A DNA stretch of 63,621 bases, the filler included, from Reticulomyxa filosa (lineage: Eukaryota > Protista > Foraminifera): assembly GCA_000512085.1 (NCBI GenBank). It is 15 parts of 15 records of this genome, joined end to end, with 100 filler letters (N's around TTAATTAATTAA, not from the genome) between each part and the next. Parts side by side here need not be neighbours in the genome. Positions count along the whole stretch, not along the records: positions 39,217 to 61,447 come from ASPP01028993.1; 14 more parts are not named here. One strand, written 5' to 3'. A model generated the notes under the pieces. The model was not told where the DNA came from and did no database searches. It saw only the letters and a program-made list of their open reading frames with translations. The translations under genes were made by a program, and so were the position numbers. This document shows positions 49,555 through 61,290 of this stretch, piece after piece; positions within the stretch are counted from its first letter, which is position 1; each line of letters begins with the position of its first letter.

Positions 49555-51204
49555 TTGGACAGAGTGTGGAAAATTCTGCAACGCTTCAATTGGAAAGTAT
49601 TGGAATGGTGTCATTATTTGAATGAAAACACGGAGTATTTGCAACAGCACGCATTTATGCATCAAATGCAGCATATCAATGCATTTGAAATGCAAATGCA
49701 AAAAATACAAGAACAAATTTTACATGAATTGGATTTGCATCTTCAGCCTTCCGTTTGTCATTTCAGTGTGGCAAGACAGTTTGGGACGAGTGTATTTGAT
49801 CCACAACGGCAGATGTTCATTGTCTTTGGCGGATTTGGGGCCAGTCAATTATTGCAAATAAATCACGCCTTGGGATACATACCTCTGACACAAACTGAAG
49901 AAGTACATGCACAAAACATGCACAAGCCAGTTTCCGATTATTCCAATAAAAAATATTGGGACAAAGGAAAAGCACAGAAAAGCCTTTCACGTAATCGCTT
50001 GAACGATACGTTGTGGATTGACTCCACTTTTGTGTGTTTGCCGCAGCAATCGACACCGAGTGTCTATGACACTCTTGTCGAGGACAAACGATCGCATAGC
50101 ACATTTATTAAGCCTCGAATGCATCATACCAGTGCCTTGTTTGGGGATGTGATGTTTGTGTTTGGTGGCCGTGGCAATCCCAACCAACCAATGAACGATG
50201 CCTGGTGTTTAGATTTGAAAACTAAACAGTGGTACAATGTCACACCAAGCAATGACACCATGTTGTATTCGCAATGGCCCTCTTGCCGATATCGTCATGG
50301 CATGTGTATTATTACCGCTAACATTAGCATGGATACCGATCATGTTGATTCCATCTCCAATCAAATTGTCATTTTTGGAGGCATTGGAGGGGCCGGTGTA
50401 TTGTTGAACGATTGTTATCTACTCGAATTCATTCAACCAAAGCAAACCATTGATCCGACTACTGTTTGTCATGATTGTATTAACTCAATCACGCATTCCA
50501 GTGTTCAAGTCCTTCGGTCAGAGTGTATCAGTGATCATTTCACGGGACGTATCCCAAGTGCAAGATGCTCTTTTGCTATGGACTACGTCCCGTCCATGCA
50601 TGCAATCCTTTTGTTTGGGGGCTTAGAAACCTTGGACTGTGGCCAAATCCCTACCTTCGATCACAACATCTATGTATTGGATGTACGTCGTCGCAAATGG
50701 AACACGCTTCCTACCAATGGTTTTTTTTAATTACATATATATGTATATGTATACATGTATATGTGCACATATATGTGTACATGTAATTAACAAAAAAGGT
50801 CCACCGGCAATGTATGGACATCGTTCTTGTCTGATCAAAACTCTTGTGACCAATATGGGCAAGACAACTGGCATTGGATAATAACAGGCGGATTAATGGT
50901 CAAGTATGATGATATCAACTCGTTTACAATTACATATAACGACAGTGTGTGGCTGTTCAATGTGAATACCCGCACGTGGAGTGCATATAAGTGGAGCAAT
51001 GAAGTGATGCGGGATTACATGTTAATCGGACATTCCATTCATGTTTTCACCACTGAAAGCAACGACAATGATAGCCATTATGATATTCCGAACAAACACC
51101 ACACTATTTTGCGGCTTGTCGTTACCAGTGGGGGCATCACTGTCTTGTTTTATGGACAAGTCCACGTGCCCGTTTTCACTTGTTCAATTACTCTTCCGGA
51201 ATAA
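49555..51204 (+). CDS. Kelch-repeat protein (propeller loosely TYW4/LCMT2-like); intron 50720-50798; 5' exons unresolved
   Basis: Kelch blades VFGGFG, RMHHTS..FVFGGR, RYRHG..IFGG and LLFGG; one-base slip at ~50838. Confidence 0.75.
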
Positions 51205-51645: not shown

Positions 51646-54052
51646 TTAAAAGCTTTTCCACAGTTGGACTATTTTATCACAAAAGCAAGATACAATAATG
51701 TTATTATCCGGCGAGATATCAAATCCAGTAATTTTCGAGTATTCTTTCAATTCTTGTAGCTCCATTGCCACCTTCAGATCCCATAATTGAATTTTGGAGC
51801 TTTCAACACACGATACAAGCATTTGTCCATCCGAAGTAAATCGTACTTCCATATTTATGTCGTAATTCGAATAATATGGATACGACAGCTTTGTCTTGGT
51901 TTGTATTGCTTGCACCTCTTTTCCAGACATGGTGTCCCAAAGTTGAATTTTTCCATTCTTTGCAATGGTTGCGATGATGTCTCCATCAGGTGAAAATTGA
52001 ATTGTTGCAATATCACTGAAATAGTGGGATAATTTCATTAGTTCGCTTCCTGTCTGTACACTCCACAATTGAATAAGTCCATATTGCGCAATAAATGCAA
52101 GTATATTACCATCTGGAGAGAAGCGTATATCATTAATTTTTGTTGTATCGCTTCTAAATGTTCGAATTTCTTTTCCTGATTCCGCAGCGAATATTCGGAT
52201 GAGTCCATCCGATACAAAAAGGCATTGGATTCCATCCCCTGAAAATTGGCCATGGGTGATGTTGCTCATATTAATCTTTATTTGTTTCATTTCTTGTCCT
52301 GATTTCACATTCCATAATCGAATTGTACTATCTTTTGAGCATGACATTATCTCCTTTCCATTTGCTGAATATTGAAAGCCATAAATCAAATTCGAATGTC
52401 CCACCAAACTTTGAATTTTCTTTTCCGACTTTATATCCCATATTTGAATAATATAACTATCAGTCGATAAGGCAATATTTATGCAATCAGGGGAAAATTT
52501 TACATTGCCTTTGGTATTCAAGTCTAGTTTAAACTTTTTAAATTCTTTGAAATATTTCATCTATTGATGTATGTGTTTTATTGGTTTGATATAAACATTA
52601 GAAGAAATAAACAATTGATAAAGATTACCACATACCAATAAGTATCGTGAAAGGATCAGATAAAAATCATCAATCCATCCAGGTTTAACGCATAATGACC
52701 GGAGCCAATATCGTATAATGGTTTCAATTTCTTTTTGTCTCTTGGTGTTTGTGAATTAATTATACGTGAAAAAATGAAGTGTTAGTATGTGTTTTGAACT
52801 TCACTGCCGCCAAAGCAAAAAAATAACAACAACAATAGTGATAAACACAAACAAACTCAACCGGTAATTTTTTCAAGTTAAATTCATATCTCATCGCAGC
52901 GATTTCGCCTTTAACTCGTTTTATATCTTCAATCTCTCTTTCGATATCCTCTTTTTTCCCCTCTTCAATAATCCATTGTTTCTCTTTGGCACTGCATTCG
53001 TTCATCCATTTCTTCACATTGGTTTTGATATGTGTCGATAATATGCAATCATTGTCATCTCTTCCGCCAACAATGTGCACAAATGCATTGCCCTCATCCA
53101 GTGCTCCAGCACTACCATACATTCCAATTGGCAAATTGTGTTCAAATTGCATCCATTTGTTTTGTGCCACAGAATATCGATATGCTTTGTTGGATGCAAC
53201 AGCATCAACACCACCATGCCCACCAAAAAACAGGATGAAGTCATTAATATAGAAATAAGTATAAAAACTGAATAATCTAAGAGTCGAACATACACGGATT
53301 TTGCAAAATCGAAATTGGTTGTTGTCTTCATGATAGTTAATCAACAGCCCCATTTTGTCACAAAACAACAACATCTCATGCTCATTTTTTTTGCTTTGAA
53401 TATCTTCTGTTTCATTTGCTTTGTGGGTGGATACAAAGCAATGGTACCATATACAGTTTCCAATTGGCAAAGTGCTATTGCTGACATATTTAAATGTATT
53501 CAAATCAAATAAATCAATATTGTTTGGACGATAGGTAATAAACAACAAATTGTTATTACTGCCCCCGATTATTGCACGAGCTCCACGATAGTCATCTTGC
53601 TTTCTTCCAATCAAAATTACCTTGTCTTCATTGTTGGTAAAAGGGACCCATTGATTATATGGCTTGCCTTTATCTTTTTCAATCGCACTTGCTTTATCGT
53701 CCCAAACGCTCACATATCTCATCATCAATGTATGCTTTGGCTTATACTCTGCTTGTCCTCCGATTGACAATAAGGTTATGTCATTCGCATTGCTCGTATT
53801 CACACGCTTCACCACAGTGTGTCCGAGTAGCGTCACTTCACTTGGGTATGAACAGATACGCTTATAGCGATTTGTGACAGTATGATATGAATAACATTCG
53901 TTATTGCGATAACCACCACAAATCAGAATTTCGTTTTTGTGAAAAACACATTGACCGTCAGAAAGCGGTGTAGGCAAAGAGGCCAAATTATTAAAGAGGG
54001 TCTCGGTATTGGTATGCACGCTTTGCTTTGCGCTGCTATTATTTGGATCCAT
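51646..54052 (-). CDS. Kelch-propeller + linker module + WD40-propeller fusion protein, 736 aa; exons 54052-52862, 52740-52636, 52560-51646
   Basis: Two phase-0 GT-AG introns join the kelch ORF (ILICGG, FFGG, IVGG), the exon RQKEIETIIRYWLRSLCVKPGWIDDFYLILSRYLL and the WD40 ORF in frame. Confidence 0.8.
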
Positions 54053-54525
54053 TTTTATAATGACAAATTAGTTTTTGCTATGAAGAGAAAATCCTGAAAA
54101 AAGCATGCGACAATTCGTTAGTCCGAAATTTAAACCTTTCGTTAGGGTTAAGTATCGTCTATTTGTATTTTTACAAAAAAAAAACATGAAATGTAGAAAC
54201 CAATGGCGTCCTAAAAATGTTTTCAGACCTGAATCTCACATTGTCTTTCCTAAGCTGACGACACTGGTTGGTTGCATAAAATGCGTTTTCTACTTGTTTT
54301 TTGCTCTTCATGTGAACCAGCTATTTACAAGATTTAACTAAACAAAGAAAAAAATAAAATGAACTTTTTTCTATCAGGAATTTCTTCAGCCCTTTTTGTA
54401 AACATATTGGCAATTAACATTACCTTACGGTTGATTGTTGCATTAAAGAAAAGTTTGAAAAAAGAGAAGGGAAAAGTATCACATCAAAAAGTATTGATTT
54501 GTTGAAACCAGAAGAAAGAAGAGAC

Positions 54526-55529
54526 ATGGCGAAGCGTGTGAACCGACAATTGAAGAAGCAGTTGGAAGAGCAAAAGAATTTGGAAGATGAATTGGAAAAG
54601 CTACAAAACGCAAAGGACCCAAAGGAATCATGTGCAGAAGTAATAAAGTTACTCAACAGTACATCACTGGACCCAATGCCAGACCGTGGTATGTGTGTTG
54701 CGTGTTCATGTGGTTTATATTTATCCCTTTTATAGAGGAGGGGAAAGAGAAAAGGGCGAGGAAAGAAAATAAAAATCTTTTTTATTTTTAAAAAGTCATA
54801 AACCAAACTAAGAAGCAAAGGGGGGAAAAAAAAGAAAATAATCCATTTGTGCAAGTAAGCAGTTGTTTCGTTGCTGGAACGGAAATATTAGTAAGCAAAG
54901 CAGGTGAACACAAAAAGATTGAGGACTTAGAAATCGGTGATACGGTGATATGCTTGGTGCCTACCCATGGAACGTTTAAGGAGAGCATCGACTGTGACAT
55001 CAAAGATATCCCCAAACACTTTGTAGATGCTGTTGTCACTGCTATTCACAAATCGCCTGCTTTTCACATTTGTTCTATCCAATATCGCAACCAATCCACA
55101 GTTTTTATTATTATTTGTTTATTTATTTTCTATAGTACTTTTTTTTTATCATCTAAGAAAACGTATACATAATCGTGTATGCATATAAATCGGTTATGTT
55201 ATATTTGTTTATGGAATTTATATGTTTTTGAATAGAATGAAGAACGCACGATAGAATGCACAGACAGCCATCCACTGTATGTGTACAAAGAGGGGTGGAA
55301 AAATGTAAGCGGCGTTGCCAAAAGACAGTACGCGTTTGAAATTGGAACACTCAAAGTTGGAGATGCATTGTGCCTACAAAGCGGAGACCTGGCGTACATC
55401 ACTCATATTCATCGCACATGTCTCAAAGACCCCATCACTGTGTTCAATCTAACTGCTTCCAAGGGACACACTTTTTTTGCCAATCATGTGTTTGTTCATA
55501 ACAAATGTGGTCCCTGCGCCATTTTATAA
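54526..55529 (+). CDS. G-protein gamma-like subunit containing a Hint (intein/BIL-like) domain and a C-terminal CAAX; 240 aa; exons 54526-54688, 54835-55100, 55236-55529
   Basis: N-part: coiled coil, then PKESCAEVIKLL..SLDPM..RENNPF (GGL-like). Hint: CFVAGTEI, KIEDLEIGDTV, CTDSHP, LKVGD, VFNL...HTFFANHVFVHN. Tail: KCGPCAIL*. Both GT-AG introns keep the frame. Confidence 0.85.
54864..55502 (+). other. Hint domain (168 aa, Cys1 to His-Asn), no homing endonuclease, split by intron 55101-55235
   Basis: Block A Cys codon at 54864, block B TxxH (TDSH), block F VFNL and terminal HN at 55497-55502. Confidence 0.9.
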
Positions 55530-57039: not shown

Positions 57040-58092
57040 TTATTTTAAATCTTTGTTGGCAAAATAATCTTTCAGCTGGAACAACTCCTTTTGGTCAACG
57101 GTGGAATTTAAGTGCTGATTGAACTCAACAGTCCAGGGGACGAAAACAACTTCAAGCAAGCGAGACACAAACAACTCGTATAAAAACATCCATTCTTTGG
57201 AATGTGTCACCAACAAGTGCTGCAGATGCAAAGAAAGAGCGGTTTTGATCTCCGAGCAAATACGCTTTACGTCAGACGATTGGTTATGCAAAGATAGCTC
57301 ACATGTCAGCACTAAACCGCAGCCACGTACTAACACACACACACAAACACACGTACACGTATACATGCACGTAATGTATACGTATATTTTATTATTCCCT
57401 GCATGAAAATTCAATTTCATTGTGAATGTGAGCTACTGTTTGTAAAGTGACAGACACAAACCTCTTACTTCCCTTTTTTTTTTTTTTTTAAAAAAAAAAG
57501 GGACAAACCAATAGGAGTATTGGTAACATAATTAATGCGATGGAAAAAGTAATCACGGCAGACAGTGGCAACGATGAAGGAGTGAATGTGCTCATTGATA
57601 TCGCGCAGCTTTTGAACAAGGGATGGCTTCCAACTCTGGAGTTGCGACTTCAAAGAGCCCGAGCCGTCGAATTTGAAGTCCACACGCTCCCAGATTTCAT
57701 AGGAGAAGGACTGCCCCGGGTACTGTTCCAGCAAATGCGGCGACGACGGCAACAAAGGCGGCGGTGGTGATGTTGACAACGGCAGTGCGAATGGGGACGG
57801 AGCGTTGGCAAGAATGGTATCCGTGGCGCTGCTGTGAGGATGGGAGGTACGAGTGGTTATTCCGTACACGTAGTCATAGGCAAGTGGTTTCCAAGCACCC
57901 TCTAACTTTGCTGCTGACGACACCGAGGCTGCGTCAATATCTACAAAGGGCATTGTCAATGGACCACAATAACAACCATATTTATATTTACCAATGGTCT
58001 CACAAAATGTAAACACCAATTTTTTCAAATGTGTTTGTTTCGAAAACACCGACCATGCTTCCGTATTTGGATTTACGATTTTTTTGGAGTTA

Positions 58093-58153
<61 letters not shown>

Positions 58154-59201
58154 CATTATTTTTATTGTTATTATTATTGTTATTGTTTGAAGGTTTCTCC
58201 AATTTCATTACTTTGAGTAAGTGGATCTTTGGCATGGCCAAAAAAGAGCGTTGAAAATGAGGTGCAACGGAAGCGGAGGAGGCGGAGACTTGGACGGACA
58301 CGGGTGTGTATGGAACGTGGTTCAGTTCGATACGAGTATGTTGATGGACAAAGGAAACGAAGGTGTGTCCGCTGTATTTCATGGCGTTGATTTGTTGCGC
58401 GAGCATCGCTACCATCGGCACGTTGGGACGGACATTGGGATAGAGCTGAATGTGATCGTATGCGTACTCCATGCCCATCAAAAAGCCGCAGCAACACTTG
58501 GGCTCCAATGGGTATTTGCGGATCACGCAATCACTTTTCACGCACTCATTGCTTTGCACATACTCCTCAATACCGTCCAAGTCGTCAACTGTTTTTCTTA
58601 TCATCGACAAATGCAACACCGGATTTGCTGCTGCTGTTGCTGTCGCTACTGCTGTTGCTGCTATCATACCGCCGCTATTGCTAGTATTGCTAGTCGTACT
58701 ATTGTTGCTATTACTATGGCCACGACCATGGCCATTACCATTGCTATTGCTAATGCTATTATTACTGTTACTGTTCATGCTATCACTATTGCTGTCCATG
58801 ACACACACTTCTTCTTTTCTTAAACATTGTACTTTCGTACTTGTCGTCGTGGATGGTTCCAAGTAATCACCACCCGTTTGACCGATTCTTGCACTCAAGT
58901 CGTTTTGCTTGTGCTCTTTCTTCTCTCTTTTTGTTGTTGTTGTATTCACATCGTCACTTTGCATTGACGTCACACCATACACCTTGCTGGGCTCGAGTAA
59001 CAGTAACACCTCTTGGCCGCTTTCTATGCTTGTGTTGGTCGTACTGTTCAGGTTTACGTTGTTGCTATTCGCTATCCTGACCGGTCCGACGCTTGCTCTC
59101 TTACCACCCTCTTTTGTAATCGAATTGTTCTTTCCTTCTACTTCTTCCTTGCTCAGGTCCTGTTCGTTGAAACCCACTTTACTTACGTCGGTGAGAAACA
59201 T
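57040..59201 (-). CDS. Hypothetical protein with Asn/Ser low-complexity tracts (at least 2 exons)
   Basis: 578-codon ORF plus a downstream ORF in more GC-rich coding-like sequence; no recognised domain. Confidence 0.65.
58094..58150. repeat. (TTA)n microsatellite encoding poly-Asn; a similar tract lies at 60715-60785
   Basis: Directly visible. Confidence 0.9.
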
Positions 59202-60149: not shown

Positions 60150-61290
60150 TCATATATACATGTATACATATACATAAATGTATATGTTACCAATCTCTTC
60201 ACTTACTTCGTCAATGTGAGACTGATTAAAAAAAAAGAAATGAGTATGTGTGTCGACCAAACTTATTTGTGAAGGCACAGGTGGCAATTTGCGTTGATGC
60301 AATCTGTCTCGTGTTTGCTTTCGCACCTGAACAACAACATCTTGTGCTTGCTTGTTGGGTGGCCTGGGCCTGTCCAAAGAGATAGGCATGGATTCCCGTG
60401 GGGCGCTGTCCTGGCTGTGATAGTTGCCCGTGTCCTTGGAGGTCCACACTTCCGTGTTGTGTCGTTTGATGGAGTTTGGCGGAGGACGACTGGGGAGTGC
60501 GGGCTTGCCTTTGTTTTTGTCCTTCGAGGCGGACGCGTCATTGTCGTGGGTCTGATTGTTGTCAGTGTCGCCTCCATTCGGCTCGGAGGTGGCGACAGGT
60601 GAGTGCTGAGGACTGATTTTGGACAAGTTGGCCAAGGACCCGGAATAGCGATTAAAAGGACGAACCGGAGGAGGACGGGCTATTTTTGAGATGCTATTGT
60701 TGCTATTGTTACTATTGTTATTATTATTGTTATTAGTATTATTGTTATTAATATTATTGTTATTATTATTATTATTATTATTATTTAGAGCGCTGTCGAA
60801 AACGTGATCATTCAAAGTGTCATCATCGGACGGCGAGCTCGGTGCGGACCTGGAAGGGGCCGAGGGTGCGGAGTTCGCTGGAGGGGATGACACGATAGCG
60901 TTCGGCGAGACGGTCTTTGGCAATGAGGGTGAAACAACGCTGGTGATGTTAGGCGAGAACGACACAGGGGTGGGCGTAGATGCCACATTGGTCGTCGACG
61001 GAGCCAACAGTTTGTCCGCAAAGAATGCTCGCCCAGTGGGTAGGTTTGTGTTGGCCCCTACTGGCGTCGAAGAGATACTGTTGCGCGATGCGCGCACTGA
61101 CTCGGACAATCGCCTCTGTTGAGCCGCTTGAAATTGGTCTTTGAACACATCGTTCACAGGCGCGACACGCGACGGGTCAAACCTCTGTTCTTCCAGCGTG
61201 TCCTTCACTGTGAACACTTCTTCGGGCATCACCGGGATCTCATATTCATAGGGGTTATGTGGCGTATATGAACCGTATTCCAGCAGTCTT
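60150..61290 (-). CDS. Partial low-complexity Pro/Ser/Asn-rich protein
   Basis: GC-rich 360-codon ORF with Pro-rich motifs (PALPSRPPP, LPPVP); 5' part lost at the contig edge. Confidence 0.6.

Follow-up and report, generated by a model that had tools for sequence, protein, structure and literature searches.

We report a three-exon gene at positions 54526–55529 of a 63,621-nucleotide stretch of DNA (the window) from the foraminiferan Reticulomyxa filosa, the predicted 240-residue product of which carries a Hint domain between a 64-residue N-terminal part (N-part), which resembles the γ-subunit of heterotrimeric G proteins (Gγ), and a short tail of eight residues (KCGPCAIL) with a CaaL prenylation box at its end. 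The Hint domain is assigned to the bacterial intein-like (BIL) type, and the N-part is probably homologous to Gγ. On balance we favour, with modest confidence, a γ-like precursor in which the BIL-type Hint domain would ligate the γ body to the prenylation tail that begins with Lys, and simple cleavage would be a side reaction.

Gene model

The gene is located on R. filosa contig ASPP01028993.1 (GCA_000512085.1; 22,231 bp), which is present in the window in reverse orientation, and its open reading frame (ORF) is composed of three exons on the + strand (163 + 266 + 294 = 723 nt) with 240 codons and a stop (ATG at 54526; stop at 55527–55529). This model was proposed in an earlier note made from the window alone; its coordinates, GT–AG introns and stop all match the sequence, and the three exon translations are identical to those first quoted. 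The features are as follows.

54526–54688, + strand: exon 1, 163 nt; start codon, 54 codons and one base of the N-part, with MAKRV, the coiled-coil helix, the SCAEVIKLL helix and LDPMPDR
54689–54834, + strand: intron 1, 146 nt, GTATGT...AG, phase 1
54835–55100, + strand: exon 2, 266 nt; end of the N-part, then the first half of the Hint domain
54835–54863, + strand: end of the N-extein, (E)NNPFVQVSS, with the NPF motif; residue −1 is Ser
54864–55100, + strand: first half of the Hint domain (exon 2), starting at Cys1 (TGT, 54864–54866) in CFVAGTEILV, block A
55101–55235, + strand: intron 2, 135 nt, GTTTTT...AG, phase 0; inside the Hint domain
55236–55529, + strand: exon 3, 294 nt; stop TAA at 55527–55529
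55236–55502, + strand: second half of the Hint domain (exon 3), with block B T-D-S-H at 55260–55271, then VFNLTASKGHTFFAN (block F) and VFVHN (block G); last Asn codon at 55500–55502
55503–55529, + strand: C-extein tail and stop, KCGPCAIL; Lys at +1, an upstream Cys and the CaaX box C-A-I-L

The model is backed both by more than 15 homologues that read across the two junctions and by paralogous loci with the same introns. In twelve homologues on Joint Genome Institute (JGI) contigs (~0.9–1.26 kb) and in P0010, which comes from Logan run SRR8820976, the coding sequence of the whole protein is uninterrupted; these intronless homologues include P0002, P0003, P0010 and members among P0151–P0162. 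DPMPDxENNPF is continuous in the homologues at junction 1, as is YRNQSTNEERTIEC at junction 2, where the pattern is YRNxxTNEE(R)T, and the MAKRV start is common to all full-length homologues, the true ATG of P0010 being located 24 nt upstream of the called one. Within R. filosa, a tblastn search with P0002 revealed the same three exons, with GT–AG introns at both positions and in both phases, in the loci L005 (RFI_21520) and L006 (ETO05852.1). A further locus, L004 (RFI_03450), is represented by exon 1 and breaks off with its contig early in intron 1, the position and phase of which are the same. The frames are open in all R. filosa loci of the family, and exon 1 is under strong purifying selection (pN of 0.06 and pS of 0.67 between the window gene and its paralogue L005).

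An identical 240-residue ORF, that of P0159, recurred in six samples, five from the JGI and one a Logan run (L087–L092), on contigs of ~1.1–1.26 kb. The 3′ ends of four of these contigs lie only a few nucleotides apart; because shared 3′ end points are as expected for transcripts, the contigs are regarded as transcript-like. The shared 3′ position is consistent with a single abundant transcript from a Reticulomyxa relative that is widespread in soil or fresh water. From homology, we infer that the gene is also transcribed in R. filosa.

Hint domain

The earlier note had recognized a Hint domain with Cys1, TxxH and a terminal HN, and this assignment is borne out by Pfam matches, by Foldseek and by an alignment of 20 sequences. 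Exon 2 alone matched Hom_end_hint (4e-4), Hint (4e-3) and Hint_2 (0.017), in each case in the N-terminal block, and exon 3 alone matched PT-HINT (1e-4), Intein_splicing (1.4e-4) and also AXH; full-length relatives score above the gathering scores for AXH or PT-HINT. The structure predicted by AlphaFold2 from the family alignment (pLDDT 80.6) has a confident β-fold at residues 63–234. A Foldseek search of this model against the PDB gave 63 matches at E ≤ 0.001, and all of the 50 listed are Hint domains. The first is BIL2 of the Tetrahymena BUBL1 locus (E = 5e-13, TM score 0.86, 27% identity) and the second is the Clostridium thermocellum BIL (PDB entry 2lwy; E = 6e-11, TM score 0.87), followed by mini-inteins, with hedgehog far lower. 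Tetrahymena BIL2 (PDB entries 6y75 and 6tmm) was also the best match of exon 3 in a phmmer search against the PDB (7e-5), and a structure search of the ESM Atlas returned only bacterial and viral Hint clusters.

In the 20-sequence alignment Cys1, the His of block B and the Asn of block F are invariant; no sequence that reaches the columns of the block B Thr and the terminal His-Asn lacks these residues. Judged by this alignment, the Hint domain is catalytically complete in its residues. In the window gene it comprises 168 residues, is without an endonuclease and is followed after HN by the tail only. The residue at +1 is Lys in all 19 of the 19 sequences that reach it, and the nearest Cys is at +2 to +4. 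The description of the domain as intein-like in the earlier note thus stands for the fold and the catalytic residues and falls for canonical splicing: since the +1 residue is an invariant Lys and not Cys, Ser or Thr, canonical intein splicing is excluded and a canonical class 1 intein was rejected. A hedgehog/Hog protein was likewise rejected (there is no sterol-recognition region, and only 5–10 residues follow HN), as was a BUBL polyprotein (no ubiquitin family matched P0002, P0010, P0026 or P0072). The reaction expected of the BIL-type domain of R. filosa is of the BIL type, its activity being predicted.

Family and nearest relatives

In the searches the exons served as separate queries, and the database proteins P0002 and P0158 stood in for the full-length product. 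With exon 3 alone as the query, a HMMER scan of 1.84 billion representative proteins gave E < 1e-30 for four proteins and also brought up a set with lengths of ~240 residues, and a word-indexed follow-up with P0002 gave 18 proteins at E ≤ 1e-17, all with the γ-like part, the Hint domain and the CaaL tail. Further, divergent members are P0026, P0072 and P0024. All members share an architecture of a helical N-part of ~62 residues (MAKRV…SC.EVIKF…DPMPD.ENNPF), a Hint domain of 168–172 residues and a K-[G/C]…C-a-a-L tail. The tail, K-[G/C]..C-a-a-L with the CaaX box C-[VAIC]-[IV]-L, is present in all complete members and extends 5–10 residues after HN; among the 164 proteins retrieved, a CaaL tail directly after the Hint domain was found in this family only. 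The mean identity within the family is 80% in the N-part, whereas it is 65% in the Hint domain. Identity to P0002 is 63–74% in an environmental cluster, 48% in P0010, which is GC-richer, and 30–37% in P0026, P0072 and P0024, which are AT-rich. The Hint domain is present in every paralogue and relative found, a distribution from which it is judged to be fixed in the family and not a mobile element. A metagenome scan with the full alignment gave 80 loci, which are distant Hint domains only, without N-part similarity or a CaaX tail.

The family has at least three distinct loci in R. filosa, namely the window gene, L005 and L006, and P0004 is encoded on two further contigs. The DNA of L004 (3459–3620, ASPP01003225.1) and L005 (3001–3162, ASPP01018754.1) is identical throughout exon 1 and into intron 1; either the locus was duplicated very recently or the assembly contains it twice. 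In L006 (1077–1958, ETO05852.1) the junction between the N-part and the Hint domain is shortened, with …DPMVDP-EVNPN-CFVGG in place of the …ENNPFxxN-CF seen elsewhere, and the tail is the shortest in the family, KCVIL, with the CaaX Cys at +2.

Most of the nearest relatives outside the family (P0005–P0150) are polyproteins with Hint domains in tandem, and the median length is 762 residues. Their Hint domains end with Lys at +1 in 196 of 276 cases, 126 of which have K-G. One of these relatives, P0012, contains four ubiquitins alternating with Hint domains, like the BUBL protein, and in P0009 and P0013 Hint domains are combined with Tim44-like domains. The HN-K-G flank marks a Hint subfamily, and in tandem arrays the next Cys1 comes right after K-G (KGCF, 17 cases). 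The K-G-C tail of the γ-like family (window 55500–55511) could therefore be what remains of an array from which the downstream Hint domain was lost.

Resemblance of the N-part to Gγ

Together, the two flanks of the Hint domain (64 + 8 = 72 residues) have the size and motifs of Gγ, as the earlier note had stated, and the box that it had identified within the eight residues after the Hint domain, C-A-I-L, is of the CaaL geranylgeranylation type. A CaaX box ending in Leu signals geranylgeranylation, as in most Gγ. The AlphaFold2 model of the N-part consists of a helix at residues 2–28, a second helix at residues 32–45/46 and then an extended segment. The DP...NPF segment of the window gene is LDPMPDRENNPF; DPM is nearly invariant in the family and most members have NPF or NPW (NPW in P0010), with NYF and NEY in P0026 and P0072, respectively. 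When the Hint domain is removed, 6–9 residues separate NPF from the CaaX Cys in the members counted, a spacing like that of canonical Gγ.

The Pfam profile of Gγ, PF00631 (gathering score 27.1 bits, in a library of 24,736 families), matched 7 of 15 N-parts with 12–17.6 bits in one register (residues 10–59 against profile positions 5–59 of 69; best E = 0.0038), and the best score was 17.9 bits (E = 0.0031) for P0154:1–70, which includes eight more residues. In P0154, PF00631 is the top family, with 17.6 bits on the N-part. When this protein was divided, the non-coiled-coil half (residues 25–62) gave 12.8 bits with PF00631 as the sole family matched, and the coiled-coil half gave no PF00631 match. 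As the non-coiled-coil half carries most of the score, the signal is not coiled-coil noise in this one member tested in halves. Furthermore, correction over 24,736 families is conservative, because Gγ had been named before any search was made. The motifs, the size, the CaaL box and the PF00631 register fit the Gγ membership proposed in the earlier note, but the PF00631 scores stay below the Pfam threshold; Gγ identity is plausible, not proven.

Proposed reaction

Type A BILs retain HN and lack a nucleophile at +1, and their splicing proceeds by formation of an N-terminal thioester, Asn cyclization and aminolysis by the freed amine (PMC4031507). BIL2 ligates its N-flank to the ε-amine of Lys and has been described as a 'dispensing platform' that conjugates the N-flank to Lys of other proteins (PMC8616854).

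In the reaction proposed here, the starting point would be the 240-residue precursor, consisting of the 64-residue γ-like part, the 168-residue mini BIL-type Hint domain and KCGPCAIL with its CaaL box. Cys1 of the Hint domain would convert the peptide bond after the γ-like part into a thioester, and cyclization of the terminal Asn would free the Lys-led tail, the amine of which (the α-amine, or the ε-amine as in Tetrahymena BIL2) would then attack the thioester. The product would be a γ-like protein of ~72 residues with a prenylatable tail, with the free Hint domain as a by-product and with plain N- or C-terminal cleavage as side reactions. The lipid anchoring of the γ-like subunit would in this way depend on Hint autoprocessing. 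We infer Gγ homology, binding to the G-protein β-subunit (Gβ), prenylation and ligation rather than cleavage as the main outcome. It is possible, but rather doubtful, that in Foraminifera the Hint domain of every copy found must excise itself via the Lys amine, joining a Gβ-binding part to a geranylgeranylated tail.

Weighing of alternative explanations

A number of observations count against a Gγ that is joined to its own tail by the Hint domain. All PF00631 scores are under the 27.1-bit cutoff, and DivIC and Mis12, which are unrelated coiled-coil families, score similarly on the full N-part. In a search of the PDB with the N-part profile transducin γ was colinear, aligning its second helix, DP with DP and NPF with NPF, but this match was weak (E = 0.24); the profile of the C-terminal half gave no Gγ match in the PDB, Foldseek with the N-part model found nothing, VIA-align with the N-part returned only generic coiled coils (Z of 4.3–4.6), which are uninformative for Gγ, and a feature search of the ESM Atlas gave no usable match. 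Exon 1 of the window gene alone gave no match to PF00631. Hint-less relatives were found neither by protein searches with exon 1 or the N-part profile, the outcome of which is sensitive to word matches and query length, nor by a metagenome scan with the N-part, eukaryotic genomes being outside the scope of these searches. In type A BILs the cleavage products outweigh splicing (PMC4031507). The K-G flank is general in the Hint subfamily and therefore need not have evolved for the γ tail. No RNA sequencing run is listed for R. filosa. The subthreshold PF00631 scores, the equal scores of the coiled-coil families and the lack of a Gγ match in the C-half, structure and Atlas searches would all be in line with an N-part that is an unrelated small coiled-coil peptide, with DP...NPF and CaaL being convergent or coincidental and the whole being a lineage-specific prenylated Hint protein. 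We consider this improbable. In 7 of 15 members PF00631 aligns in one register over nearly its whole length; for P0154 no family scores higher, and for the non-coiled-coil half of that protein no other family matches. The correction for a family named beforehand is conservative, and the size, the two-helix layout, DP/NPF (NPW in P0010) and the CaaL box all agree with Gγ.

A different fate of the N-part, which we regard as unlikely although it carries more weight than the convergence just discussed, is that the CaaL tail anchors the Hint domain or the precursor at the membrane, while the γ-like peptide is released or conjugated elsewhere and is never joined to the tail; the thioester would then be resolved by water, by Lys of another protein, as for BUBL/BIL2, or by a lipid, as in hedgehog. 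The conjugation of the N-flank to Lys of other proteins by BIL2, the closest solved relative, is consistent with such a fate, as are the predominance of cleavage in type A BILs, the tandem-Hint and ubiquitin–Hint polyproteins among the nearest sequence relatives and the generic nature of the K-G flank. However, a CaaL tail of 6–10 residues directly after the Hint domain occurs only where the N-part is γ-like, removal of the Hint domain leaves, in the members counted, a Gγ-like spacing of 6–9 residues between NPF and the CaaX Cys, no sterol-recognition region follows the Hint domain and the N-part is not ubiquitin-like. Far less probable than either is a catalytically dead Hint domain that persists as a permanent structural insertion, or a locus that is a pseudogene or an annotation artefact. 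The absence of a listed RNA run for R. filosa would fit this, but the catalytic positions are invariant where covered in proteins down to 30–37% identical to P0002, the frames are open in all loci with strong purifying selection and transcript-like contigs were found in six independent samples. Joining of the γ-like body to the prenylation tail by a BIL-type reaction hence remains the explanation that we favour.

Comparison with known systems

Without the Hint domain, the R. filosa protein resembles G-protein γ (PF00631) in its length of ~70 residues, its coiled-coil helix and second helix, DP(L/M)...NP(F/W), a basic residue before the tail and CaaL; it differs in the 168-residue Hint domain between NPF+5 and the tail, and the similarity is below threshold. 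Its Hint domain has in common with BIL2 of Tetrahymena thermophila (BUBL1; PDB entries 6Y75 and 6TMM) that it is eukaryotic and nuclear, free of an endonuclease and equipped with Cys1 and a terminal HN, with no Cys, Ser or Thr at +1. BIL2 uses Lys as the acceptor nucleophile, and the R. filosa domain has Lys at +1, for which the corresponding reaction is predicted. Whereas BIL2 lies between ubiquitin-like domains and serves to conjugate ubiquitin-like units, the R. filosa Hint domain has a γ-like N-flank and a short prenylation tail. The type A BIL of C. thermocellum (PDB entry 2LWY), the second structural match, is also a mini Hint domain with an HN end and no nucleophile at +1, but known type A BILs are bacterial and occur in secreted or variable proteins, whereas the R. 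filosa Hint domain is eukaryotic, has a signalling-type host and is split by a spliceosomal intron.

Class 1 mini-inteins share the Hint fold, Cys1, TxxH of block B, block F and HN, and the location within a small host with flanks that resemble a complete protein. They differ in that the Lys at +1 in R. filosa would permit no branched intermediate at +1, and no 'empty site' homologue was found in the protein searches and metagenome scans. With hedgehog/Hog proteins the R. filosa protein would share the coupling of a Hint thioester to the lipid modification of a signalling protein; in R. filosa, however, the Hint domain is followed not by a sterol-recognition region but by a CaaX box, which is the lipid signal.

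Annotation of the locus and neighbouring genes

The NCBI model of the gene, P0158 (window 54105–55529, + strand; 342 residues), is named 'YD repeat protein', with AXH as its sole Pfam family on record. It was rejected in favour of the 240-residue model, as its 81-residue N-terminal extension and the 21 residues from retained intron 1 occur in no homologue; the extension is drawn from the 474 bp gap to the divergent kelch gene. AXH (PF08517), the ataxin-1/HBP1 module, matches the Hint domains of the γ-like family as well as or better than the models of the Hint clan, and the NCBI product is therefore recorded with 'AXH' only, an overlap of which annotators should be aware. Altogether, five R. 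filosa GenBank models (P0158, P0001, P0163, P0164 and P0004) are wrong or fragmentary, with spurious N-terminal extensions, retained pieces of introns or truncation at introns or contig ends, and carry the misleading names 'YD repeat protein', 'intein splicing region domain protein, partial' and 'hypothetical protein'. These five misannotated gene models are corrected here.

The neighbours of the gene are an intronless WD40 gene (51646–52560, − strand) and kelch/β-propeller genes (52760–54052, − strand, and 49555–51204, + strand). The WD40 gene was rejected as a candidate for Gβ, its product being WDR5-like. A WD40 gene, of 661 residues, also adjoins the paralogue L006, which is probably a coincidence, such genes being abundant in the genome. 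Two further ORFs (57465–59201, − strand, and 60150–61232, − strand) contain long poly-Asn and Asn/Asp low-complexity runs and have no Pfam families on record.

Novelty and implications

The earlier note knew of no described fusion of Gγ and a Hint domain, and none was found in the searchable full-text literature, which likewise gave no fusion of a prenylation signal and a BIL and no link between Reticulomyxa and Hint domains. The survey of eukaryotic Hint proteins by Bürglin (2008) mentions no G-protein or CaaX context. The γ-like part and the Hint domain each appear to be of a known kind, and it is their combination and position that appear to be new. To our knowledge, protein-splicing elements are rare in eukaryotic nuclear genes, those known being in housekeeping proteins (VMA1 and Prp8, for example) or in ciliate ubiquitin-like arrays.

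In conclusion, if the proposed reaction is true, this gene family would represent the first heterotrimeric G protein with a natural protein-splicing element, and nature's own counterpart to expressed-protein ligation with a lipidated peptide. It would also add a second eukaryotic example, independent of the first, of Lys-directed ligation by BIL-type chemistry, and the compact 168-residue module may be useful as a tool for attaching a short prenylatable peptide to a protein when Cys is absent at +1. For the organism, the membrane anchoring of Gβγ would become a conditional, self-catalysed post-translational step, and a Hint domain that every paralogue of a signalling subunit carries, exactly between the body of the protein and the signal for its lipid anchor, would represent a novel way of regulating G-protein signalling and protein lipidation.

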